Below, piece by piece: positions 4,118 to 40,324 of a stretch of DNA of 41,996 nt. Position 1 is the stretch's first letter. Each line of letters opens with the position of its first letter. A program made the position numbers and the translations under genes. This stretch comes from Ministeria vibrans ATCC 50519 (taxonomy: Eukaryota; Protista; Filasterea), in assembly GCA_943704425.1 (NCBI GenBank), contig CALSCP010002358.1, positions 42,797 through 84,792 on the forward strand. The letters run 5' to 3'. The notes under the pieces were generated by a model that saw only the letters and a program-made list of their open reading frames with translations, was not told the DNA's origin and did not search any database.

Positions 4118-8761
<4,644 letters not shown>

Positions 8762-10813: not shown

Positions 10814-10845
<32 letters not shown>

Positions 10846-10849
<4 letters not shown>

Positions 10850-11636
10850 ACCAATGACTCGGCGACAGATTGATTTGTGTCTCGCAAGGCACCCAGTGAG
10901 TGCTCGTGCAGCTTGGACTGGGCATACTCATCCGCCAGCAACTCATCTGTGGTCCTGGCTGCTCCGCTGAGCTCAGAGGACTCATCGTTTGGCTCGGGCG
11001 CATTGAGTAGGCCATAGCGCACAAGAAGAATCCCACATAGAATCAGAAAGAGCATTTGGCCCACAGAGTAAAATACAGTGCCCACAATGATTCGCGAACT
11101 GTCAATATTCGTAATCTAAAGGCAAACATAAAGGTAAACAAAAACGTGATCATAAATAATAAAAAATAATGCATTATTCATACTCTTGTGCAGGTCAGCG
11201 CCAAATCCCAACCACACAAAATGGTCCGAATGCCAAGAAAACTCAAATCAATGCAAATTCCACCCTGAACAAACGACGTCACATCACAAAATGCCTAAAC
11301 GCGAGCGAAAATAATACAAAGAGTCAGAGGGGGATAACACAATAATTTGACTTTGGAGACGTACATTGACTGCAAATTGAATTCCCAGAGCAATCAGACC
11401 CATTGCAAAGAAAAGCAGTGAGACAATGTTTGCCATACAAATCAGAATAGTCGCAAAGATTGTCAGACACTAAAATTAATAGAAATGAAAGAAAAAGAGA
11501 AAAATTAATGAGTTTTGATGAGATGTAAAAATATTAATAATTAGTGGAGAAAGGAGCGCAGTTTTAGCAAGCGAATTTATAAACAAAGTGAAGAGAGGGA
11601 GACAGAAAGGAAGTGATATAACGTGAGTGAGTGAGT

Positions 11637-11729
<93 letters not shown>

Positions 11730-12918
11730 TGTGTGTGTGTGTGTGTGTGAAAGGGGCCACAAGACAGGTTGTACTATTACGAAACCCTCTCAAACGAAAA
11801 AAAAATGGGGGATCATTTTCGGAATCGATTCAGTCTATCAAAATATTCTTGAGTGACGCATTCGTCTTACCCGCGCAATTTTCTTGAAAATTGTGCCGCT
11901 CTTGCGAAGTTTCTTGTCACGTGAGCGCACGCAGACAGCCATAAATAGGTCAACATCGCCAAATATAGCGAAAAGAAAGACAATAGCATCCATGAGAAGG
12001 GCACAGAAGGCAAAGGTGATCATCAGTTTTTGGAGTGTGTCGAGCAGCGCAATGTAACCCAAAACCATCTCAAGCGTGTCAAAGAGTTGTTGGAACCCGA
12101 CCAGAAGAGTGGCAAATCCGATGGCCGAGATTAAGAATGCGACTGTGCCTGTAATAGGCCAACTAAAGAGAGAATGCATAAGAAAGGTTGTTGCCGGTTG
12201 GAGTGACACGTACTGAGCAAGAAGAGCATAAGCCAATTGTGTCAGAAAAGGTTGATTATCGGGCGATTCCTTCCGTGACTCGCGACGTTTCTTCAGACGG
12301 ACGCAGTACACAATGACAAGCAGAGCCACAATCACACAAAAGACACACCCCAGAATCAGAGTGGTTCCCGCAATCATGTCGGGAGAAAATCCAGTGTAAG
12401 TGACAAAGTCAGGTTCGCCCGCCACTAGTTGACCGGGAGCAGGACAGTCATACACAAACGACGCATTCCAATTAGGGGTGCTGGGATCGAAGGGCGGAGC
12501 GGGTCGCGCACTCTCGCGAACGTTGAAGAAGTCTTTGCCGTTGGGTCCCGATGGGCCTTTATCGGGTCCCAGCGCCCTGCAAAAATGAAAGGAGGGAAAA
12601 GGTGAATAGCAATAATACAAGAGTATACATGTACAATCACACACACACAGTTCATTCATGGTTTCTTCTGACTCTTACTCTCCGACTGCGTCTTTGAGCT
12701 GATCCTCCAACTCCTTTGGGAGAACACTTACGCCAAGAATAAGCCCATTCCAAATGGTTTTGGTCGCGGTGTACCAATAGCTCTCAGAACAACCTTCATG
12801 TGAAAGGATTGTCTGATTGAAACTGAAAAACAAAAACATGAATGAGATGGGGTTTTTTTGGTGAGTTGGAAAAATTATTTATTATTATTATGACTGCCAT
12901 TATTGTTAAAATAATAAT

Positions 12919-12950
<32 letters not shown>

Positions 12951-14595
12951 ACAGCTTATTATTGTTATTATGTTATTATGTTATTGTTCTTAGTATTTTA
13001 GTATTATTATACGTATCGTATAATAACAACAAAACTATATTATTTGCATTACTTGTAACAGTCCCAACTGATTTGCTCGAGTTCAGGATAGAGAGGAATC
13101 TGCTGTTTGGCCAATCCCCAGTCACCTGAAAGCAAAATTAAATATTACAGTGAAAATTGACATTAGGGTTACAATTGTCGAAGAGAAGAATTAGAGAGTC
13201 GTACCTTGATAGTAGCCAAAAGTGGTGTTCTGGTACTGCTCAGTGGGCTCGTTTGGGTCTGAAAGAATCGCATCGACTTGTGCTTCGTATTCCCAGGGCG
13301 AAAGGAGCTCCAGGACATTCGAAGAAGTGGGTTGAAACTGACGAGAGTAGGAATAGAAGTCAGTCCGTCTCTCTTCTGTTTCCCTCTCACCCCCCTCTCT
13401 TCCTTACGACTAAAGTGGGGTCTGCAATTGTACGATCGAGAATATTGATATTATTGAGATTGGCAATAACGGCCAAATTCACTTGGGCGTAAATATGAGA
13501 TTGAGCACTCACAACATCTACAAAAAAAAGTAAAAAAAACAAAACAAAAACAACAGTAAAAACGAGTTGAAACGAGAGGTATAACACAAAGAAGTCAATC
13601 AATGCCATTCTTCTTACATGATCCGTGTGAGTCTAAACCCGCATAAGTCTACAGTGCCAGAGAAGAGTCACAAAGGGAATGAGAGTGAGTGAGTGAATTC
13701 AGAGAGAGAGAGTTTGTGATTTTTTTTTTAAAAAAAGTGATAGTCTTACGATTGGGTGAGTTCCGTTTCTGAGCATAAATTCACAATCCCCGACAAGGCA
13801 GTTAAAAACCTACAAGAAAAGAAAGAAGGAAATAAATAATAAATTCACTCATTCCCTTTCACACATACTGACTCAATCTGATTCTCATCCAGACAATCTA
13901 ACTCACTCTCATTGCAATTCAGGCCATCTGACTCACTCACATTCAAACATCCTCACTCTTATTATAAAATCAAACTTGCTCTCTCTCTCACCTGATTGAA
14001 TCCATGAGCATCAATCACAATCCGCACAATCGTCTTCAAGTCCCGACACACCTCCACTTGAATATGTTCCCAGTCTCCTTCATGTGTTCCCACATGACAC
14101 ATCACATACCTGGTTTTATATAAAAGAAACAGTTTTGGTTGTTTCCGTTGGCTTTTTAGCAGAATAATATAATTTTAATTTTTTTTGTTTTTTTCTGACT
14201 GGAAAATGTAACGGGTGTCTGGTTCAAAAGCGGAATAGTCCAGCGCCTGATTTGAACAGCCGTTGTATGAGTACCACATATGGTAATTGAAGACAAATGT
14301 GCGACTCGTTGAGTTTTCAGCCAGATGGAAATATATTGGCGCCTAAAAACACAATAAATATGATAGTTAGCTGAAAATTCTCTTGGGATTGCGTGGCGTT
14401 GTACTGTTGATCCGGTGGTTTCGTCAAAGGGCATTCCAGAATAGTCAAAGTCGGTGTCGTATGCTGAGAGATAAAGCACACTTGGAGTGGCATTGTACTT
14501 TCGTGTCATCTCCAACAGATTGCGCTCGGTCGCCTAAACCCAAACATCCATATTTATGAGTAATAATAATAATACTAATTATAATAATAATAATA

Positions 14596-14661
<66 letters not shown>

Positions 14662-15357
14662 TAATAATAATGATAATGATAGAATTATTATTATTATTAA
14701 ATTTTTCTGATTATCACCAAATTTTAATACGTCTTATTCGTCTTACTGCGCCCAAATTGGTCCCATTCTCGCGTTCGAATATGCTCGCAGCGGCAAGAAA
14801 CCGTTTTGGGTCGTCCAGACGGTACTTTTCAAGACGATGCATGAACACAATCCTGCAAAAACAAAACGTAAATGAAATGCGTAAACGGAGAGACTGTGCA
14901 TCTTCGAGCAGATCGTTTCAACGTCAAATTTCGTTGGAGGTCACACGCGCAACAAAACGGGCAATGTAAGACTGGAGGAAGCGCGGAGCAGCGTGCGACA
15001 CTGCCATGTGTGGCTGTGGGAGGCGCACGGGCAGGCAGCAGGGCCGGGTGGGCGGCAGAAGGAGCGAGAACGACACGAACGGTGCATACGGTGCGAATTC
15101 CCAGGCACGCGCAGACACGGTCGCGCGGGACACGGAGCAGTTGCAGTTGCATGCATTGGCAACATCTGCGTCGGTGACGTCGTTGGTGATCGGCTACAGG
15201 GCAAATGGTGAGGCGTGATCACAGAAACATCCTAAACAAGGTTAGTTTGTACCGCGATCGGTCCAGCACACTCGACGGGCGCGTCTGGTTCAACAAGGGC
15301 CGTTGAGTGCCGCGCCAGAGACACAACAATAGCGACGAACAGAAGAGGTGATCGCAT
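10846..15357 (-). CDS. Multi-exon membrane protein: signal peptide + Vps62-like domain + TM + myelin proteolipid (PLP/DM20/M6)-like 4-TM domain
   Basis: Signal MRSPLLFVAIVVSLA. Vps62-type motifs FAPIVFMH, APIYFH..FNYHMWYSYNG and HEGDWEH (~14065-14090). TM MIAGTTLILGCVFCVIVALLVIVY, then four more hydrophobic segments with the loop FC...ICIDLSFLG...LCGWDLALTC. The 3' end is approximate. Confidence 0.75.
14560..14670. repeat. (AAT)n microsatellite (intronic)
   Basis: Directly visible; a similar tract lies at ~22473-22535. Confidence 0.95.
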
Positions 15358-27253: not shown

Positions 27254-30200
27254 NNNNNNNNNNGGCGGTACGAGAAGGAGTGCTGGTCAAGATGCTCTAG
27301 GGTGAATCCAAGTAGCGGCTGCGAGACAGGGCCTGGAGGCGGCGTATGAGTTTTACAGGGAGTGACAGCGGCGTCAGTAGAGTAGGTTGCTGCCTGCTCG
27401 TTTTTCCCATTTTACCTTTTTCTTTCTTTCTTTCCTTTCTTTCCCTTTCTTGAGCGTCCTTTACCGCCTCCTTCGTCGTCTTCTTCAGCCTCTTTCGCAG
27501 ACCCCTCGGGCACAGCTGTTGCGCAATATTTGTATATATTTTCGCCATATGTATATTTCACAACTTCCTAATATTATTTGTGTTTTTCGTCTAATATGTA
27601 TTCAGAATACTGTATTCTATCAGAATATTGAACATCACGCGAAATATTGCCTAAACACAATAAAATAAACAGCTTATTGTCACCTTTTTTGTCTCAATTT
27701 TTTCACGATTTTCCCAAAACATTCCTCCTAAATTTACTAAATAAACCCCAAAGTGTACACACCACAAACCAATTCTCTAAATAAAACTCAAATCCAAGAA
27801 AGAACAACATTTATTGCGGAACGTGTTGCTTCGTATACTCGTAAACACAGAGACTTGCCGTCACATGGACATTGAGAGACCGAACCAGACCATACTGAGG
27901 AATCTACATATTCGCGAAACATTAAACACAATATAACACAATAGTCACTGCTAACCTCCACACAGTCTTGACACTCTTGCAGCAACGGCGCAGGCAGCCC
28001 TCGACTTTCACTGCCCACGATAATCGCAGTCTTACGCGGAAACTGATACTCTACAAACCACAGCATCACATACACTTGCCCATCACCAACCACCACAAAC
28101 CATATTATACCTTGCAATGTCACCGAGTTGGCCGTCTGCTCCACGCCCAACACAGTGTATCCCTGTGCCCTACAAAACCAGTACAATCAATGATCAACGG
28201 TGCTACTCGCAATCACGTTTGTCAAAAAAACAAAAAAAAAAAAACAAGGGGTACCTGAGCTCCGCAAAGTAGGCGGGCAAGCGGGCCTCGGGCACAGAGG
28301 CAATGCGCAACCATCGCTCGCTACTCATGGACGTGGTGCGAAAGTCAGCGCTGTGGGCCACGCGCGCGTCTGACACGACCAGCGTGTGGACACCAAACAC
28401 TTCGCCCGTGCGTGACATCCCACCCAGGTTCACTGCCTTGTCGACAAGCGTAGCAATTACAATCAGATCGCTGTGTGTACGCTGTGTCAGTCGTTCGCTT
28501 TCTGCGGCCGCCCCCAGAACAGTGTCGGCGGCAGCAATGGCATCCCACGACAACAGCATGGGCTTCACCTGCACATCTCCCATCTCGTCTGACACAGTCA
28601 CCGCAACAGCGCTGCCCTCATCATCAATAGCATCATCAGCATCTTCATCCAACCTCTTCTCTTGCGATCGCTTCGCATTAAACGTCACCTGCAGCTCCGC
28701 TAGTGTCTGTCGCACACTCGGCCCTCCTGCTACTTCCAACGGATCCGGAACCGGCTCCCCATCCGCGGCGCCTGCCTCGACGTAGTACGGGCCGTGCTGG
28801 GCACGCATCTGCTCAAAGACACTCAACGGAATCGCATCCACCAGCCCGCCAGCGTCTTCCATTGAGTGCTCCACGACGCGCACCACATAGTCGAGCGTAA
28901 ACAGACCCGCGTCAAGTGCACCCACTGAGTAGACGCGCTCAAGGCGTTCCTGTGTACGTGCAAACTCACGGTCTGCATTGAGTCGTTCCACAATCACATT
29001 CACTGTGCGATCGTGCGATGGCACACCTAGCTCGGCCAGACGCGTATGAAATGCCGTCACAATCATCTGAGCAAAGACACGCACACCAAACTGGTTGGAC
29101 GACACGAGCATGTGAAAGAGGTCCAACATCTCACGACAAAAGTCCGCTTCCTCCTCAACACGCGACTCGCGTCGCAACGCACGCTGAACCGCACGCGCAA
29201 CCGTCACGGCAGACAGAAGAAACGACGGCGTTGCTTGCGCATCAAGCACCCGATCAAACACCAACGGACGCAGCTCGGCAAAGGCAAAGACGGCGCGCGC
29301 CAGAATCCACTGAGCCATGTACGAGACGGCATTATCATGGTCCCGCTCGTACACACCCAGAGCACTCGCCACAAGCGTCCGTGCAAATTCAAGCTCATCA
29401 GCACGCGTCTCGGTCGTCACACGACCCAGGCGCCCGCTGAGCATCACAATAGCCACCCACAGACGCGTCGCACTCATGTGCTGCGGTGCAAAACCTCGAA
29501 TGCCATGAAACATCATCTCACGTGCTTGTCGTGCAAACTCTTCCACAAGCACCGTCGCCACACTCACCGGCTGTGACACACGCAGCAGCAAATCATACAC
29601 AGGAACGCGCACCAGCGCATCGCCAAGCCGCACAGTGTCCAGTCCGCCCGTCACCTGAAACTCCACCACCGTTTGCCGTCGTGACGGTCCAAACGACGCG
29701 AGACGCGCCAACAAGTTACCATGACGGCTCACCACCTCTGCGTCCGTCTGGGGTGCTCTCAAATACGCACACACTCGCGTAGAGACCTTGAAAAATGCAA
29801 AGGAATAGAATAATAATTATTAATAATGATGACGTTATAATAATAATAATGACTGTACTAATAATAATAATAAAAATGTATTGCTTTACCTCGGACGAAA
29901 TCATGAGCTTGCGCTCACCTACATCGACAAGAAAAGTGGCTGTGTTGTAGATGGTTAAAGCCAGGTGAGCGCACCACTCGTTGCGAGTGTACACCGTGTC
30001 GTCCATGTGCTCAATGTCCTCAAAGAGCCGCTCCTCTTGACTGCACTCGACGGTGTCGTCAACATTGTTAGAGCGGTGCTTACGCCTGGGCTTTGCTAGA
30101 GCGGAAATCATGGCAAACGTCTCGACGGGTTTGCGCCGTTGAAGCGCTTGCGTCGCTCCCTCAGGCGATGCTCTGTTCACAAAGGCCAGCAGGCGTGCGT

Positions 30201-33200
30201 CAAAGACAAAAGTACACAGATCGGACACAAGTGGAACGTGTGCCTTGAGCTCTTGAACCTGTTCCACCAGTCGTCGCGCGCCCGCCACCGCATACGTAAG
30301 CACCTTGGCGGCCGACGCGACTGCGTAGCCATCACTCTCGTCTACCATGCTGGCAACAGTCACGCCAAGCGTGCGCAGCAGCGGACTCAGCATATCACGA
30401 CTGCAGCCCGTCATGAGACGCGTCGCCGCCTCAAACACCGCACGTTGCTCGCTCAGCGGTGCACCGCGCGCCACAGCCACGAGTGCTTGCCAGCGCACCG
30501 CCTCCATTTGCGACACGAGTCGCTTTTGTTGCACGCGAATGTTCCATGTGCCCGCCAGCTGTCCCTGCAGCGACGGCCAGCGCACCCCCAAAAGCCAGGC
30601 ACACGACACGGCCGACGACGCTATGCTCGGGCTCGACTCGGCACAGCGATGAATCAACTGCAGTGCCGTGTGTGCTCGCATCAACATATTCGTTTCCATT
30701 GCGGCCGTCTCGGTGACCACACCCTGCACGGCTGCCACGCAACGTTCAAGCAACGCACAACGACGACTCAGATCAATGACGCGCGAGAACATTGCACTGA
30801 GCGACCAGGCACACGTGTCAAAAAGCTCACCATAGCACTCTGCACTGTCATCGTCGTCACGCGCCGCAATGTTCAGTCCAAACACGGCCGCCTCGCAGGC
30901 ATCTACAAATTGCACAGGGGCAAACGTACGACCACAGAGTAGTGCCATCACTGCATCGACCACACCGGCACGCTCGGCCGTCGCCAAAAGATGACGCAGC
31001 AGCAACGCCACACGACCAACCAGGCCCTGTGGCATGTGCGGACGTGTCGCAATGCCAACGAGAGTCGACACACACGGCTCAAGAAGCATCGAGAGCTGTT
31101 CGGGCGAGTGTATGGCCTCAAGGTGCGCCACCACGACACTTGTGGCAAGACGGCGTGCCGCCACGCTCCATTGCGACCAACTAGCAAGTTCCAGCGTGTC
31201 GTCGCCGTCGACAGTCACAGGCGCAAGATACGCAGCAAGGGGAGCGTGCAACTGCTCACGACAAAGCATGGCAAGCCAGGCGAGCGTCTCGGAGTCGCGC
31301 CAGGTTGCTTCGGGCGCGTCAAAGAGAAGGGTCGCTTGAAAGTCGCCCAGGAGACGCCAGAGAACCTCTTGGTCGGTCGAGGCAGATGGAAGGACCGGAA
31401 CAAGATGTCGGAGACCCCCAAAGAGCATAGAGAGCATCTCGGTGCGAATCTGGGGCGACGCGGCGTACGTGGCGTGAACAACAAGATCGGGAAAGTGGCG
31501 CAGGGCAAGTGCAAGAGAGCCCGTCAGTGAATGAACTGTAGCAACGGTGGCAAAGACTTGACAGCGATTGAGCAGGGGAGAGAGTTCGCGTGACTCGTTG
31601 GGGGTTAACAAACACGCAATGAAGGCGTCAAAGTCACCGCGACGCGCATGGCATTGGGCCATAGCAGTGTGGTACTCAAGAAGCACCTCGTCGACGGTAA
31701 GCGTGTCGCCGTCCAGAACAAATGATGTGCGGAAAATGGCTGTGGTGCTCACGCGGGGGGTCACTGTTGCAACCACAAGGTCCTCTTCGCCGTCCCACAG
31801 GGGCGCTTTGCGCTCGCGTGACGCGGTCCGCAGATAGTGTGCGAGAATGAAGCAGCGTGCACGCACTTCGTCAACATAGACCACATTGTGAAGGACCACT
31901 CCAATGAAAGCTGGATGCATACAGAGCGTCGTGTCAGTCGTGTCATCATCGCCGCCCATGTGTGTGCCCCACGCCTCGGCGGCCGCATAGAGACGACGGA
32001 AGCGTGGCAGCAGGGGCTCGACCAGATGCAACATGGACTGTTCCAGTGTCTCCAGTACAATCAGGTAGTCATTCCACAGCTGTGCCAGCGCCGCCGAGTG
32101 GCGAGGATTCCACGCAAACACACTGCAATGGCGCGTCCACACGTCGTCCGTCGTCGTCCCGTTTGCCAGCGACTGAACCAGGGTGCTCAAAAGGAATCCG
32201 GCTCGGCGACGCACAAGTGGATCGGTATGCTTGAGCCCAGCCAGAACAAGTGTCACGAGTTCTTCGTCGTCAACTGCACACCACAGAGCCAAACTCGAAT
32301 GGACAGCACTCAGAACAGCATAAGCATCGTTAGCAATACTCTATATATGAAACAATAATAATAAAAACAATAGTACGTCTGAAATTAATATTGATCTCTT
32401 TTGTGACTTTCTACCTGATCGTCACCGGAACAGGGCACCATGGCACGCCGGACCCATTGCCAGACAAGCTGACCATGAGAAGCGGTGGGTGGCACGCGGG
32501 AAAGAGCCACAATGGCGCGGCTACGGACATGTCGGTTGGGATGCAGAGTGAGCGCAAGCGCACTGCGCAAACATCCCGGCACGTCCGAGCCAAGAGCCTG
32601 TACAAGCTGCGAGGCAACGGCATCGGTGAGGATCACCTCGCTGTCGTCGTGTCCGGTGCTGGCAGCGTCGGCGGGGTCGGTCAGGACGAGTTGGTCGAGA
32701 CATTCGCGAGCGGATGAGACGCGCGTGGACATAAAACGAGCGGTGGCGCGGGCGACAGGCGCGATCATACGCGGGTCCTTGACTTCCGAGACCACACTTG
32801 CAATGCAAGCAACAGCTGCGGCAACGAAGTCGCGCTGAGGAGGACGCTCGACGCTCGCCAGACGCGACAGAAGCTGCGCACACAGCTGAAACACCAGAAG
32901 GGGCTGTCTCGACGCCACACGCACCGCCACCTGCGAGCACAGCGGCAATGTCTCGACATCTGCCGAGAGTGAGGTCAAAACGCCCCCGAGGTCGGCACTC
33001 TCCGCCAAGAGATCGACGAGAGTGGACATGAGTAATAATAATAATAATAGTCAGTCAAGATCTAATAAAATTAATGAATAATAATAATAATTATTAATTA
33101 AAATATTTCGGTTGTGCTCATTTTCTGCGAATGGAAACACAGGCAACGTCGCCAGTGCGAGCAGCAGAGATAGGAGTAAGTGTGACAAGACTGTGCTCAA

Positions 33201-36038
33201 TGGAAGTGACAGGAACCAGGTTGGGAGAGCACGAGACGGTTGCAAGAGAGTTGTAACGCGAGCGAAAAGGCACAAAGATCTCAGTGGGCAGTAAAATGGA
33301 CGTGTCAAGAGTGTAACAGAAGGAAAAGTCGGCGGTGGCATTGACAAAGGTCATGTTAAGTGCAGTGCCGGCAATGGCACGGGCGTAGGTGCGCGAGAGA
33401 GCGGTGATGTACTGTGCCGAGGGAAACGCTCCGCCCTGACCAAACCCATCGTACTCGGTCCAACTCAGGAGGTTCTTGTCGGCCTTGTCCATCACCTTGA
33501 CACACTCGGGCAGCCACTGTGCTCCATCGCAGCCACCCCACTCGGTTAGAAACGCACCACCGCCAATGCGCGCAATGTCAGTCTTAATGGCATCCTGCAC
33601 CAAATCAGCCGTCGCCGCACACACGTCAGGTTTGGGCTCGGGGCCACTAAAGGACTTGCAGTAGTAGTGAAACGACAACACACTTCGATTCGCATAGGCA
33701 GGCCCACCGGGCACTTCAGTAAATCCACAGCCTACTGAGCCACCGAGGAGCATTCCCCACGTCACCGGCTCAAAAAAGATGAGCTTTTCTGTGTCCTCTG
33801 TGCGAATTCCCTCAGCGAGTGCCGCATAGAGCGGCTGCAAATTGCGCTTGGCGGCCACGCCGGGCACAAACAGCTCAGGATCGCGATAGACGTTGCCAGC
33901 AAAGGGCTCGTTGATGAGCTCGTAGCCGAGAATGGCGTCGACGGAGCGCCAGATGGATGCTGACTTGGTCCAGAACTTGACAAATGAATCGCGAATGTTA
34001 TGCTTGTTGGAGTAGATGGCTTGGTAGCAAGCACCCTCGGCTTCCTAAAGGAAAGAGGTTGAGAGAGTTTGAAAGAGAGAGAGAGAGATTGAGAGAGAGA
34101 GAGAGTTTGAGAGGGTCAGAGAGTTTGAGAGAGAGAGAGAGAGAGAGAGAGGCGCCATGAGGCAAGCGCTGTCGTGTGTACGTACGGTGAGTTCGTTGGC
34201 GCCCCACGACCGCGACGAACAGTTTCCCGTGTAGGGCCAGGGAAAGGGGAAGAGTGCGTCGTCTTTGCACTTGTTGATGTTCCACAAGGGAATGCCGTCG
34301 TAGTTGCAGAATTCGCTGGAGAGGGCGTCCTGATGCGTGTCCTACACACACACACACACACACGGCAAGAGAGGTGAACACGCATGTGTCTGCGTCGGTC
34401 GCTTACAAGAAGAGTGTAAATGCCGCGCGAGGCGAGCTTGTCGACGACGGAGCGGGTCATGGAGGCGTACGTGGCGTTGAAGACGCCCTCGCGCGGCTCA
34501 TACCCGCTCCACATCCACCCGACGCGGACGGCAGTGACGCCCCAGGCGGCAACTAGAACGACAAGCAACGATGAGGGGCGCAGTGGGCGGCAGAGGGAGA
34601 GCAGGCGACGCACTTTCATCGACAAGCGTGTCGTTGAGCAGCCAGGCGGGGTACCAGGGAACGCCCTTCTGGACGCCGTTGATGCCGTGGAAGATGCGTT
34701 CGCGGCCCGTCGACACTTCCCGGAAGCGTCCCGTCGCGTCTACGTTGATGGGCGCCAGGGCATCGCCGACGGGAATGAGCGCGAGTACGGCCGAGAGCAC
34801 ACTGATCAGCAGCAGGAAGAAAAGGTTCATTGCAAAATTAATAATAATAATAAAATAATAATAATTATTATTATTATTATTATCATTGTAATGAATATTA
34901 AACAATAAGAAAATTAATAATAATAAAGACGTCATCTTCTTCTTCAGAAGTCAAAAATAGGGATAAAAACGATTATGGAAAAATGAACGAAAACGGTTTG
35001 AACGTATACATAAACAGGGTTTTTAGATGTTTCAAAGAGCCTGGTTCTACAGTAGGTTCAGCGCGTCATACTTCCCTGGCGGCATAAATGAAATGAGCGT
35101 TCATCAATCATCGTTCGTTAATTAGATGAAGTTGCACAAACCGAGTGTGTTTCTTTGGGGAGAGAATATAATTATATTATTATGTATAGAAGGGGGGGTG
35201 CTGGTGGGAGGTCGGTGGAAATGCTATGTGTTCAGAGATTGTTGTTGTTGTTGTTATTGTTGTTGAGGGGAATAATGGCGACGGAGATGCGGTCGGCAAA
35301 GGTCGTTTCGCCATTTTCAAAGACGACTGCGATGGACGTGCGTTCGTGTGTGAGTGTTGCGACGTCCGCATAGCCAGCGGGTCCGCCCCACAAAACAAAT
35401 TCAGAGTGCCATGAGCAACCTTCATCGTCGCTGAGGCGCACCGTTATGTTTGCACGCGCAGTGGGGTCGCTGGCACACACGTAGACAACGTTCGAGGTGG
35501 AAAACACACGCTCAATGCCACACACAATGCCCGTCCATGAGTGTGTCACGGGTGTCACGAGTGCAGGGTCTTCAGCAAAGTCTGTGAGTGTCGTTCCGCC
35601 GTCGGGTGAGTGTGCTGTCATGCGATGACCCGGTTTCGGCGACATGTTTCGCGCGTTCATGTACAGCTGTGCGTGAGAGGTGCTCGAGCGCACCTGTGCG
35701 AATTGCGACTCACGTGTGTACTCCTGTGCAATACCGGCAAAGCTCCACGACGCACCAAGGTCATCGCTCACAAGTGCACAAGCGTACGGCTTGGATGCAT
35801 TACTGCACACAAATGGCATCACAAGACGACCGTGCTCGACACACGGACTGACGTCGCACAGCGATCCGACCACTTGCAGTCCATGTCCCACCGCTGGCTT
35901 GACAACATGCGAGAAGGGTGCTGGGGGAGGAGGCATCATTAACGGCACAGGCTTAGTCCAGGTGACAGCCTCGTCGCGCGACTGCATGACAATGACATCG
36001 TTGCCCGTCTGAGAGAAAGGAGGGGGAAAGAAACAAAG

Positions 36039-36113
<75 letters not shown>

Positions 36114-37346
36114 AAGGGGTAGAGGGAGAGAACCAAAGTGATAGAGAGAGAGATGTGTGTGACTGTGATTGTTGTTGTAGGTGAATGTGGACAAGGCAGT
36201 TGAGTTTGTCGTTTCATGTGGGAATTTTGACGGAGGATTTGGGTGTGTACCAGGCAGTGAGAGTCACGCGGGACAAGTAAGAACGAATGAAAGAGAGAAA
36301 GAGCGGAGGAGAGGAGAGGAGGGGAGAGGATAGAGTGAGTGAGTGATAAGTGAGGGACATGCTAAGGTTGAGGTTGATTGAGTGTCTATTGTGTTTGTTT
36401 TTGTGTTGGTTAGGTGTTTTGCTGTGTGGGTGCGCTTGCGATTGGCGGCGGACTGCATCATGTGGATGCGGATCAGTTGGGGTGGTGGCTGTGCGAGCGA
36501 CAGTTACCCAGTGGGGGACTCAACGGACGGCCAGGTTAGAATTTTGCTTGACTCATTGTATGTATGTGTGTGTCTGTCAAGTTTCTCTCTGTGTGGGGGA
36601 ATAAAATTGTGATTGTGGGGAATTTTTTTTGTCTCTTATGGGACTGGTTGTGAGTTGTGATTGTTTGCCTTGTCTGAGTGTGAGTGCATTTTGATGGAAT
36701 TAGACTTGACTGGCTTGTGTAAACCAATTGACACACATGCAAAACAGAGAAACTTCCCGACGTGTGTTATTCGTGGTGGGTTCTCTCATCCTTAGCTGTC
36801 ATCAAGGTACAGTACACTATCTCAAAATCCGTATTAAATGTTTTTTTTTGTTATTCATTTGATGTGATTTGATGATTTTGCGTTTTTGGTTCTCTTACGA
36901 AGTCTTTTTTATTTGTATGTCACCTTTTGTGGTTTTTAGCGATTACATTGGATCAATGGACCGGCTCTACGAAAGTTTATTTTAGCCGCACAGGTACATT
37001 ACAACGACAAGCGTAATCTAAACTTGAACCCCAACATTGTTAGCCCGAACTCTAACCCTAGCCGAAACATGAACTATACGATTGTATTCAGACGTTTAAC
37101 ACATACTCAAGCAGCTTATGAGACCTAACCCGAACCCTTATGATCAGCTTAACTAGAGCCCTAACCCTGAATGTGTAGGACGATGAGAGTGGAGGCATAG
37201 CAGACCGTCCGGGCGACATGAGCGATCCCTACCATACACTTTTTGGTCTTGCGGGTCTCTCACTTTTGGGCAACGAGCCCTCTCTTGAGCCAGTCGACCC
37301 CGTTTACTGTCTTCCTAAGTCTCTCATTGACGAACTCAATTTGTAA
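26355..37346 (+). CDS. RABGGTB: Rab geranylgeranyltransferase (GGTase-II) beta subunit; exons 26355-26357, 26497-26629, 26692-27029, 36181-36276, 36414-36534, 36748-36806, 36940-36993, 37179-37346
   Basis: [34 protein letters not shown] | [78 protein letters not shown]. All junctions are in phase and together give one complete protein. Confidence 0.93.
27254..27263. other. Assembly gap (10 N) directly after a (GA)n tract
   Basis: Run of n. Confidence 1.
27811..33029 (-). CDS. TARBP1: tRNA (guanosine-18 2'-O)-methyltransferase Trm3/TARBP1: long helical N-terminal region + C-terminal SpoU domain; exons 32415-33029, 29890-32340, 28255-29786, 28111-28169, 27956-28050, 27811-27903
   Basis: [74 protein letters not shown]; in-phase introns. 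Confidence 0.9.
33118..34830 (-). CDS. Secreted GH5 endoglycoceramidase-like glycosidase, 4 exons
   Basis: Signal peptide; [58 protein letters not shown] (acid/base), FLTEWG (nucleophile), [11 protein letters not shown]-terminal domain. Confidence 0.9.
35232..36008 (-). CDS. GH33 sialidase/neuraminidase, last exon only (5' exons not found upstream)
   Basis: Asp boxes [32 protein letters not shown]; GRLVMP, YMNAR, R.NI, AGYADV (catalytic Tyr), VFENG. Acceptor 'ctctcag' at 36009-36015. Confidence 0.82.
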   Translation of the reverse strand, partial: TGNDVIVMQSRDEAVTWTKPVPLMMPPPPAPFSHVVKPAVGHGLQVVGSLCDVSPCVEHGRLVMPFVCSNASKPYACALVSDDLGASWSFAGIAQEYTRESQFAQVRSSTSHAQLYMNARNMSPKPGHRMTAHSPDGGTTLTDFAEDPALVTPVTHSWTGIVCGIERVFSTSNVVYVCASDPTARANITVRLSDDEGCSWHSEFVLWGGPAGYADVATLTHERTSIAVVFENGETTFADRISVAIIPLNNNNNNNNNL

Positions 37347-37374
37347 TACAACAAATAAATACAATTTCAATTAC

Positions 37375-38661
37375 TTATAATTCGACCCACTGTTCAATTA
37401 AAGAGTGTTCTTGCCAGAGTTTCAGAGCCAAATGAGCCACTGAGTGGCGGGCAATACGCACAATGTCCCAATGATTGTGCCAATGAAATGCGTAGGCGCC
37501 GGGAAAGAAGATTTGTGATGTGTGATTGACACGAGACCATTGGTGGAGAGACTCGTCTGAGACGCTCTTAGTAAAAAGAGACGGTGTGAGCTTGACTTGA
37601 GAGTTGTATGGGTCTGCGTAGTGGAGGAAACCGGAGTCGGAAAGTAGCCAGATGGGATCGAAGAAGGCGGAAGGAAGACGCAGGAAGGAGGGAGCGGCTC
37701 GGATGCGACGCGGATTGACGAGTTTCGCGTACTGTGTGAGCAACGCTGCGCGTGCAATGGCCTCTGCGGCAATGCGCAGGGCGGTGGGACTGCCTGGGGC
37801 AAAGTAAATGATGGCTGTGTTGAACCTTGAGCGGAAGGACCAGCGATAGGCAAAGTCGGTGTGGAGAAGTGAGTGGAACGGACGCAGAAGCATCATGTCA
37901 AGGTCAACGTAGACACCACCGTAGACTGCAAGAACTGTGTGGCGCACGATGTTGCTGTACGCTGTGCGCGTAATCCCCGTGGTGTTTTCCCAGTCCTTGT
38001 TGGCCAGGCGCGTTGTGATTGTGTATCGCAGACGGCTGTCGGTGAGACGCACTAGGATGCGTGAGGCAAGGTCGCGCCAGTGAAGGGTGTGCACCGTGAC
38101 AGAGCGTCTCCAGGGCTTCAGCACCTCCATGAAGGCATCCCGTGTTGCATTACTGTCCGTCCAGAGCCATACGCGGACACAATTGGGGCCGTGCGAGTGA
38201 ATGATGCTCAAGAGTGAAAAGTGCGGCAGAGGTGGGAAGGTCGGACCGGCCCAGTAGACATGGAAGAGGGCTGGCTGCCCTCGGCATGCATTGAAGTCCT
38301 CATCCTCCAGCTCTCGTGCTAAAGCGTCCATGCAATTCGAGTAGACTGAGACGGGTAGGGAAACCATGTTTGGGCGCGCGACATTGTCAAACCGATCACA
38401 CGCTCGAAATGATTCGCTTTGCAACAGGTCGTCCGAATGGTTGCGAGGAGTGGCTCCATCCGCGTGCGAGTGTACCTTCAACTGTGCTTGAGCAGGTGCA
38501 CGGGACATGGGAGCCGTTGCGGAGACAGTGAGTGAGTGGCTTGTCCTCACAATCCCAACTCGGTCGTCCGTCGCGTCGCTCAGGTGCATTTCCATCCTCA
38601 GCCACACCAACGCAAAGACAAGAAGTATCGCTACAACGGTTGTCCGAAGTCTCAAAATCAT
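37375..38661 (-). CDS. GT32 (DXD, alpha-1,4-glycosyltransferase-like) type II membrane glycosyltransferase, intronless
   Basis: N-terminal TM VVAILLVFALVWL; FHVYW, SNIVR..VL.VYGGVYVDLD, FDP.W, AFHWHN. Confidence 0.85.
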   Translation of the reverse strand: MILRLRTTVVAILLVFALVWLRMEMHLSDATDDRVGIVRTSHSLTVSATAPMSRAPAQAQLKVHSHADGATPRNHSDDLLQSESFRACDRFDNVARPNMVSLPVSVYSNCMDALARELEDEDFNACRGQPALFHVYWAGPTFPPLPHFSLLSIIHSHGPNCVRVWLWTDSNATRDAFMEVLKPWRRSVTVHTLHWRDLASRILVRLTDSRLRYTITTRLANKDWENTTGITRTAYSNIVRHTVLAVYGGVYVDLDMMLLRPFHSLLHTDFAYRWSFRSRFNTAIIYFAPGSPTALRIAAEAIARAALLTQYAKLVNPRRIRAAPSFLRLPSAFFDPIWLLSDSGFLHYADPYNSQVKLTPSLFTKSVSDESLHQWSRVNHTSQIFFPGAYAFHWHNHWDIVRIARHSVAHLALKLWQEHSLIEQWVEL

Positions 38662-38911
38662 GAAAGTTGTGAAAGTGAAGTGAAGTCCAAAAAAAAGTAA
38701 CTCTGTCACTCTTTCTCTCTCAGGGATCAGTCACCTTTTACAGCTAATATGTAATTATAATAATTTCTTCTTCTTTTTCTAATATGTAGTATTTATTGTA
38801 GTTAGAGAGACTATCCTTTTTCAAAGTGATCACTTGAGTGACTTGGCGGACCTAACCACTCAGGGGTGTGCATGAATAATAATAATTTGATATTACATAT
38901 GTACACAGTCA

Positions 38912-40324
38912 TCAGTGTTCTTCCTCAAGCAGCTTGGTCTCCCCCCACATTTTGAGCACACCATCCGCCACCGAATCCCGTTCGATGGGCAAACTCCAGC
39001 CATTGTGCCAGTGAAATGCAAAGACACCGTTGAAAAAGACGTCGGCGGGACGCACCGCAGTGCTCAAGCGAGAGCGCCACTCGGGTGTCATGCGCTGTGT
39101 GAAGAGCAGCGGCGCACGGCGCACACCCAAGCTGAGCGCATTCACTCTATCTCTACCATGACTAGTGCCTGATAATACACTACTGGTGGAGTCCGCGAGT
39201 GCCCAAAGGGGATCGAAGAATGCGGACGGGAAACGCACGAGGGTCTGTGAAAGGACCGCAACCAGGTTGGACGGGTGAAGACGCGCCGAGAGCTGCGCGA
39301 GATCCACCGAGTCAAGAAGGGCATTTTCAAGGGCAGTGTGAAGGGGCGAGTGGGTGGTGCTGTTGCGAATGTGCACAAAGGCAGCGCTGACGTGCTCAGT
39401 GAAGGGTCGTCGGTAGGCAAAGTCGTGTGTGAGCAGGGGGTAGAGCGGTCGCAGGAGGAACACGTCCAGGTCGGTGTAGACACCGCCGTAGACAGCAAGC
39501 ACAACAAAGCGAATGGCATTGTCAGCCTCCTGGATCGTCTTGGCTTGGTCCGATGCGAAAAAGCGCATTTGCATGATGTGTGACAAGAGCAGTTGCGGTT
39601 CGCCGGATTGAGAGCGCATTGCAATGTGTTGAAGTAGAGCACGCCAGTCAAGGGTCGTAACAGTAACCCAGGGATGCCAGAGTTGCAGTTGTGCAGCAAG
39701 GGCATCTCGCATGGTGTCAGTGTCGGTCCAGAGCATGAATTGTACGCATCCACGACCGTGCGCGTGAAGGACACTCGCCAGTCCGAAAAGAGATGTTTTC
39801 GCAAGACGTGTACCGCGCCAGTACGAATGAAAGAGCACACGTGCATGAGTACAAGGCACCACGTCGTCCTTGAAGTGCTCCAGGGTGTCTTGAAGGCCCT
39901 GGAGGCACTTGTCAAAGAGCGGCTGAATGCGAGTTCGGTTCTTGTGCGCTGCTGTGGCACTGTCGAGGGCATCGCACATACCAAAGACCTCTTTGAAGTA
40001 CACGTCATTGTGGGTGTTTGCGCCGAGGGGCCTGCGAATCGAAAGAGATCAGAGAGATGAAACATTGATCCTACTAATCGTACTCTTTTGCATATCCTGC
40101 TGTTAATGTTGCTGCTGCTGAAGCTACCGGCCTACATCAACAGAAGCAGAGTGTGCATACCTACGATGGGTGGGTTGTGTGCTCTTGTTTAGGTACGGTT
40201 TGTGTGGTGTCAGCAACGAAGTTTCAACGGAATCCACATCCGAATTACGGCCGAGTGCCGCGAAGAGAAAGAGTGCCCCGCCACACACTAACAGTATAGG
40301 GAGGTGGGGTTTCCTCAGAAGCAT
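38912..40324 (-). CDS. Second GT32 glycosyltransferase (tandem paralog); intron 40032-40160
   Basis: Exon 1 MLLRKPHLPILLVCGGALFLFAALG splices in frame to ORF 38912..40003; FHSYW, YGGVYTDLD, SAFFDPLW, AFHWHN. Confidence 0.85.

Follow-up and report, generated by a model that had tools for sequence, protein, structure and literature searches.

The analyzed window is a 41,996-nucleotide (nt) stretch of contig CALSCP010002358.1 of Ministeria vibrans. Its minus strand, from position 15357 to 10846, probably carries one gene for an 818-residue surface glycoprotein, in which a Vps62-type ectodomain is attached to a transmembrane (TM) helix, TM0, followed by a tetraspan module of four further helices, TM1 to TM4. 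The module has a layout and motifs resembling those of the PLP/M6 proteolipids, while membership in that family is not demonstrable; it is treated here as a lineage-restricted orphan.

Gene model of the probable ectodomain–tetraspan chimera

When the 16 exons of the model are joined, they form a single open frame of 818 codons with only the terminal stop. All 15 introns begin with GT and end with AG, and their lengths range from 59 to 401 nt. The GC content is 0.49 in the exons and 0.12–0.44 in 13 of the 15 introns, whereas intron 2 (0.56) and intron 9 (0.51) are richer in GC than the exons. The elements of the model are the following:

15357-10846, minus strand: whole gene, 16 exons, start codon ATG at 15357, stop codon TAA at 10848-10846
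15253..15357, minus strand: exon 1, start codon (first ATG of the frame) and signal peptide (MRSPLLFVAIVVSLARHSTA / LVEP...), hydrophobic core score 1.74, donor GTACAA
15081..15193, minus strand: exon 2, ending in ...EFAPYAP, acceptor CTGTAG, weak donor GTTCGT, restores the frame into exon 3
14852-14747, 14533-14405, 14342-14200, 14109-13992 and 13809-13750, minus strand: exons 3–7, ectodomain, GT-AG and frame-consistent
13648-13618, 13517-13408, 13337-13205, 13125-13053 and 12822-12679, minus strand: exons 8–12, ectodomain, GT-AG and frame-consistent
11871..12576, minus strand: exon 13, 235 uninterrupted codons for the Pro/Gly-rich stalk, TM0, a basic stop-transfer sequence, TM1, the short outer loop, TM2 and the basic inner loop
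11365..11469, minus strand: exon 14, TM3, phase 0-0
11184..11294, minus strand: exon 15, four-Cys outer loop 2
11115-10846, minus strand: exon 16, TM4, acidic tail and stop codon

The first-pass annotation had placed the ectodomain and the TM module in one gene, which is supported by this single-frame model. The stalk, TM0, TM1 and TM2 are all encoded within exon 13, so that the fusion of the anchor to the tetraspan module is independent of splicing. Alternatively, exons 1–12 could encode a secreted Vps62-like protein and a separate five-helix protein could start from an in-frame ATG at 12659, which is located within intron 12, 83 nt 5′ of exon 13 (open reading frame [ORF] 11838-12659). Such a pair of genes is very improbable, because exon 12 contains no stop codon ahead of its good donor GTAAGA and joins exon 13 in frame, and because the peptide read from this ATG (MNELCVCDCTCILLYY...) is a translation of the polypyrimidine tract. 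Additionally, intron 12, which leads from the ectodomain exons to exon 13 and has a pyrimidine tract and a CAG acceptor, is only 102 nt long, and therefore a terminator and a promoter could not fit into it. Since a single exon encodes TM0, TM1 and TM2 and intron 12 is so short, the chimera would be one gene, unless splicing shows otherwise; the union of the ectodomain and five TM helices in a single gene is well supported by the model.

In the exon outline drawn earlier one small exon (15193-15081) had been overlooked, without which exons 1 and 3 (IVFMH) are out of frame with each other. Intron 2 (14853-15080) is 228 nt long, which is a multiple of three, and all three of its frames are open over long distances. 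Because of these long open frames and the weak donor, a different arrangement of exons at the 5′ end, around intron 2, may be conceived. A paralogue search with exons 6, 13, 15 and 16 in the 29.7 Mb assembly returned only the self-match, showing that the gene is single-copy there.

The window is eukaryotic DNA with microsatellites and short AT-rich introns. An uninterrupted (TAA)n microsatellite of ~11 units (10816-10848) starts with the TAA stop codon itself, so that the 3′ untranslated region opens as a pure repeat; the stop is safe from slippage. AATAAA signals are present within 60 nt past the stop. Intron 13 (401 nt, between TM2 and TM3) contains at 11640-11750 a stretch of (CA)n and, after it, ~90 nt of (CT)n, and introns 3 and 11 are nearly pure (ATT)n/(AAT)n, with a GC content of 0.12 and 0.19.

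Predicted membrane topology and the Vps62-like ectodomain

The hydropathy of the translated frame defined a signal peptide and five TM segments, TM0 to TM4. TM3 corresponds to exon 14, which is hydrophobic throughout (hydropathy 2.54), and the other segments, together with the C-terminal tail and the ectodomain motif discussed below, are located as follows:

12300..12374, minus strand: TM0, residues 490-514, IAGTTLILGCVFCVIVALLVIVYCV followed by RLKKRRESRK, hydropathy 3.18
12093..12161, minus strand: TM1, residues 561-583, WPITGTVAFLISAIGFATLLVGF, hydropathy 2.14
11958..12026, minus strand: TM2, residues 606-628, LMITFAFCALLMDAIVFLFAIFG, ending with IFGD (11966-11955), hydropathy 2.51
11020..11091, minus strand: TM4, IIVGTVFYSVGQMLFLILCGILLV in exon 16, hydropathy 2.33
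10846..11019, minus strand: acidic, predicted cytoplasmic tail, 55 residues, ending with -E-S-L-V (10849-10860), then TAA
14064..14084, minus strand: H-E-G-D-W-E-H motif in exon 6 (THEGDWEH at 14087-14064)

The segment between TM0 and TM1 consists of 47 residues and is Cys-free, the nearest Cys being at the inner end of TM0 (VYCVRLKK). The first outer loop, between TM1 and TM2, has 22 residues. A Cys residue is located eight residues after the IFGD of TM2, and the basic inner loop that leads to TM3 has ~29 residues. Outer loop 2, between TM3 and TM4, is ~46 residues long and contains four Cys at residues 3, 14, 27 and 35 of exon 15, which are Cys 695, 706, 719 and 727 of the protein. The strings on which the tetraspan proposal had been built were found on the minus strand: WPITGTVAF starts at 12161, and the loop AFC-DVTSFVQGG-ICIDLSFLG-IRTIL-CGWDLALTC-TR is the complete exon 15 (11294-11184).

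The counts of Lys and Arg residues are 7 and 9 in the predicted inner segments and 1 and 3 in the outer ones, and all sequons except one, as well as an even number of Cys residues, fall in the predicted outer parts. This charge distribution follows the positive-inside rule, and it is consistent with the earlier proposal that an extra helix places the ectodomain outside while the termini of the tetraspan module stay inside. Hence, the predicted topology of the tetraspan part is that of four helices with cytoplasmic N- and C-termini.

Pfam families were scanned exon by exon at E<=10 with 15 of the 16 exons, exon 8 (10 residues) being below the scannable length. In these scans HMMER filters conceal matches below roughly 15–17 bits and each exon stood alone, and negative results are therefore weak with regard to a distant relative. 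The region of TM0 gave weak matches to Glycophorin_A, EphA2_TM, Orf78, PRIMA1, DUF6479 and DUF4064, which were rejected as real relatives, being generic matches of single-pass anchors, and a match of the signal peptide to Neurokinin_B is meaningless. Apart from these and the Vps62 match of exon 6 given below, the scans returned nothing.

The ectodomain comprises exons 2–12 and ~65 residues at the start of exon 13, and contains eight N-x-S/T sequons and, when the mature portion of exon 1 is counted, 12 Cys residues. It had been described as Vps62-like on account of an HEGDWEH string, which is indeed present (minus strand, 14084-14064). The exon with this motif, exon 6 (YVMCHVGTHEGDWEHIQVEV..., 39 residues), matched the Pfam family Vps62 (PF06101) at model positions 362-394 of 541, with E=0.02 and 13.7 bits, which is below the cut-off of 22.1 bits. 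Hence, the assignment is weakly supported, by a single sub-threshold match in one exon. A six-frame search of the genome with PF06101 returned nothing, and as exon 6 itself was missed, this search was insensitive. When neighboring exons were inspected by eye, YAP-x-[IV]-x2-H-x2-E-x-Y (YAP-IVFMH-x2-E-x-Y), W-Y-S-Y-N-G (MWYSYNG) and D-S-H-G-S-Y (LDSHGSY) were found in what we take to be the order of the Vps62 family.

Resemblance of the tetraspan module to PLP, DM20 and M6

The tetraspan module was compared by eye, in a hand alignment, with published peptides of PLP (1-20, 30-51, 84-116 and 175-245, PMC3344688; 36-58 and 179-238, PMC7081236) and M6a (QFGIVTIGEEK and DLYGDFK, PMC8629785). The PLP loop strings quoted in the first-pass annotation agree with these published peptides (TWTTC..SLCADARMYG..VCGSNLLSIC). 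The likeness begins at the start of TM1, where a Pro is followed six residues on by an Ala; the opening Pro had been pointed out before, and the P-x5-A pattern is shared with PLP peptide 1-20. In TM2 the pattern L-L-x-[DE] is found, for which PLP has LLLAEGF...RQIFGDYKTTIC, and at the inner end of this helix IFGDVDLFMAVC can be set beside IFGDYKTTIC of PLP and LYGDFK of M6a (DLYGDFK). The Cys that follows this motif is 8 residues away in the window protein and 6 in PLP, where it is the palmitoylated Cys108. Both proteins have four Cys in outer loop 2, which in PLP form two nested disulfides (C183-C227 and C200-C219), and the spacing of 8 between the third and fourth is as in PLP 219-227. The loop shares with PLP the pattern T-S-x3-G-x-[LI]-C-x-D-x4-G-[VI] and then C-G-x2-L-x3-C, so that the matching of the C-x-D-x4-G and C-G-x2-L-x3-C spacings, claimed earlier, was borne out; it also shares G-I-x-T-I with M6a. 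As in PLP, ~10 residues separate the last Cys from TM4, and the basic inner loop of ~29 residues is similar to those of DM20 and M6, its size being unlike that in tetraspanins. A short first outer loop without Cys, both ends predicted inside, and a cytoplasmic tail are further features in common with PLP/M6 proteins. The shared features are colinear and topologically equivalent, and they are spread over three separate regions of the module.

On the other hand, several hallmarks of the family are missing. The juxtamembrane Cys cluster ahead of TM1, which is conserved from flies to mammals and palmitoylated in fly M6 and mouse GPM6a, and which in PLP reads GLLECCARC (PMC3344688), is absent from the window protein. 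The sequence LFCGCGHEAL at the end of TM1 (PLP 30-51) is also absent, and TLLVGFQQLF is found in its place. Between the last Cys and TM4, instead of C-K-T-A-E-F-Q-M-T-F-H-L-F-I, the window protein has C-T-R-I-T-N-I-D-S-S-R-I-I-V, in which only the length and the basic residue before the helix agree. We take LFCGCGHEAL and C-K-T-A-E-F-Q-M-T-F-H-L-F-I to be PROSITE signatures of the family. Both variable segments of outer loop 2 are 6 residues shorter than in PLP, and the loop is ~15–20 residues shorter overall. Moreover, an additional helix and an ectodomain of ~450 residues lie ahead of the module, an arrangement not described for any PLP/M6 protein, and the host is apparently not an animal, in keeping with its small assembly and short introns.

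The searches did not provide relatives of the module. The Pfam family Myelin_PLP (PF01275, cut-off 23.8 bits), to which PLP1/DM20, GPM6A, GPM6B and Drosophila M6 belong, gave no match at E<=10 with exons 13, 14, 15 and 16 scanned singly, which is a weak negative, and its six-frame search of the 29.7 Mb assembly found nothing, although the same method missed exon 6 for PF06101. A phmmer comparison of exon 13 with 1.84 billion representative proteins gave no match at E<=0.001. A word-index search with exon 16 and two metagenome scans, one with peptides of exon 13 and one with an exact 30-mer of exon 15, the latter aimed at a spliced transcript contig, were also without matches. The ESM Atlas gave no usable match for exons 13 and 15, and a sequence search of the PDB with exons 6, 13 and 15 gave nothing relevant. 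We know of no solved PLP/M6 structure, and none appeared in the PDB searches with the window exons either. As no relatives were found, no family profile could be built. In full-text literature searches there was no report of a proteolipid in choanoflagellates, and a curated survey describes PF01275 as a metazoan novelty that is absent from two unicellular holozoans (PMC5620054).

These observations can be explained either by distant kinship or by coincidence. If the four C-terminal helices truly, though very remotely, belonged to the PLP/DM20/M6 (lipophilin) family and had here been joined to an additional helix and an ectodomain, then the family would predate animals. This explanation accounts for the same order and topological position of several short motifs, including the Pro of TM1, IFGD and the Cys patterns of the loop, and for the DM20/M6-like length of the inner loop (~29 residues). 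It is weakened by the lack of a PF01275 match even for the 235-residue exon 13, which encodes TM1 and TM2, where the family is best conserved, as well as by the missing Cys cluster, LFCGCGHEAL and TFHLFI junction, by the shortened loop segments, and by the placing of PF01275 among metazoan novelties. The chance estimates are also unimpressive after the freedom of alignment is considered. With the Cys residues anchored, 7 of the 27 non-Cys positions of outer loop 2 are identical to PLP in the hand alignment, for which the binomial tail P is ~1e-3 to 8e-3 before gap freedom; because the gap placements were chosen by hand, allowing for two 6-residue gaps raises it to roughly 0.02–0.1. The chance value of the TM1 pattern is ~0.06–0.15, and 0.06–0.19 identical 4-mers in register, as IFGD is, would be expected by chance.

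The other explanation is that the tetraspan part is an unrelated, lineage-specific four-helix module, in which the PLP-like motifs are coincidental and owe their appearance to the four anchoring Cys and the helix composition. It agrees with the negative outcome of every search run, with the contribution of Cys pairs to the hand alignment of the loop (27 of ~36 raw BLOSUM points) and with the expectation of ~2 identical 4-mers, at any position, when two sequences so rich in helices are compared, but it fails to predict echoes in the same order and topological places across three parts of the module. Because of this colinearity the echoes, taken together, are suggestive. The absent hallmarks and the silent profile, set against the colinear echoes, keep true homology a tentative reading, while for coincidence we see an even chance, and what remains is assigned to errors of the model. 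Hence, the kinship with PLP/DM20/M6 that had been proposed is not established, as PF01275 is silent exon by exon, three hallmarks are missing and relatives were not found.

Proposed function and relation to known systems

In the organization proposed here for the single-gene chimera, a cleaved signal peptide would direct the first ~450 residues to the cell exterior or the lumen. This outer region, with 12 Cys and 8 glycosylation sequons, would consist of a Vps62-type core with H-x-G-D-W-E-H and then the Pro/Gly-rich stalk, after which TM0 and RLKKRRESRK would bring the chain back to the cytoplasm, and the four further helices would form the tetraspan bundle. Outer loop 2 is probably stapled by two disulfides, and the PDZ-type S-L-V, in which the acidic tail ends, could serve in PDZ binding, as a C-terminal S-x-V-COOH presumably fits a class I PDZ ligand. 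Like PLP/M6 proteins and tetraspanins, the tetraspan part may anchor the protein in a membrane domain, organize it laterally and link it to scaffolds in the cytoplasm, and the ectodomain may perform binding or enzymatic work outside the cell; the tetraspan and its ectodomain partner would be made as a single chain. The gene model, the predicted segments and the motifs can be read from the sequence, and from these we infer the topology, disulfides, glycosylation, PDZ binding and function.

Several observations speak against this interpretation. The weakest point of the gene model, which is known from genomic sequence alone, is the poor donor GTTCGT of the GC-rich intron 2. The Vps62 assignment is below the Pfam cut-off and based on one 39-residue exon, and the nine other scanned ectodomain exons (20–47 residues) gave no Pfam match at E<=10. 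As no homologue was found in the exon searches, conservation or selection of the exons is without support, and the function is deduced from architecture alone.

The molecular function of PLP/M6 proteins is still debated, and the family underlies myelin disease and epithelial tricellular junctions. It is possible, if rather doubtful, that the tetraspan module is a pre-animal relative of PLP/M6, which a protist has kept to anchor a receptor-like protein, with its Vps62-type ectodomain, in the membrane. If this were true, the origin of a supposed animal novelty would shift to before animals, the ancestral job of the family could have been to anchor or partner a large ectodomain, and the role of the tetraspan core, carrying its own ectodomain, could be studied in a simple unicellular system. 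If the resemblance is due to chance, the protein would still be the only case found of a Vps62-type domain on a multi-pass anchor, although an orphan of limited general interest. The novelty lies in the arrangement of domains, the parts being of known kinds; the gene is an orphan, and its link to lipophilins is unproven but testable.

Other ORFs of the window were also annotated. On the plus strand, a 331-codon ORF at 7751-8746 gave a sub-threshold YfhO-like match (E=1.3e-5, 24.3 bits, cut-off 28.5); it had no database relative at E<=1e-20 and is not a conserved exon. Two adjoining long ORFs on the minus strand at 28203-32292, one with a TARBP1-like N-terminal domain and the other with a SpoU methylase C-terminus, are probably one gene of a TARBP1-type tRNA methyltransferase. 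They are followed at 33118-40003, on the same strand, by a run of carbohydrate-related ORFs, which includes a GH5 cellulase together with its C-terminal domain (33118-34625), a repeat protein of BNR/sialidase-like type (35232-36194) and two ORFs for DXD glycosyltransferases (37375-38709 and 38912-40003).

Among known proteins with a related ectodomain, the Vps62/Tda6/plant DUF946 family (PF06101) is similar in that the H-x-G-D-W-E-H exon aligns in the C-terminal half of its model, while the N-terminal half of that model, which according to the literature is a beta-tripod, has no counterpart in the window protein. A further difference, besides the sub-threshold match, is that the window domain is on a five-helix anchor, whereas the members of this family are soluble or single-pass; full-text searches of the literature turned up no multi-pass anchor reported to carry a Vps62 domain. 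In yeast, Vps62 behaves like a component of the early secretory pathway (PMC4298680), and its luminal or outer side is the same topological side as that predicted for the window ectodomain.

Of the tetraspan families, tetraspanin, claudin/PMP22, CD20, MARVEL, Tweety and prominin were rejected on layout, and none of them gave a Pfam match in the exon scans; the loops and Cys patterns that we take to be typical of these six families misfit the window protein. Tetraspanins (PF00335) have a similar general plan, with a disulfide-stapled second outer loop, which in their case binds the ectodomains of partners laterally. In contrast to them, the window protein has no match to PF00335 in the exon scans and no C-C-G, having instead L-C-G-W-D with a single Cys, its inner loop is ~29 rather than ~4 residues long, and its outer loop 2 is far shorter than theirs. 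Drosophila M6 and Anakonda, which act at tricellular junctions, are also a pairing of a proteolipid tetraspan with a large ectodomain protein, which in the window protein would be joined in one chain. This likeness is a functional analogy only, as Anakonda is unrelated to Vps62, and the binding by M6 needs palmitoylated N-terminal Cys residues that are absent from the window protein.

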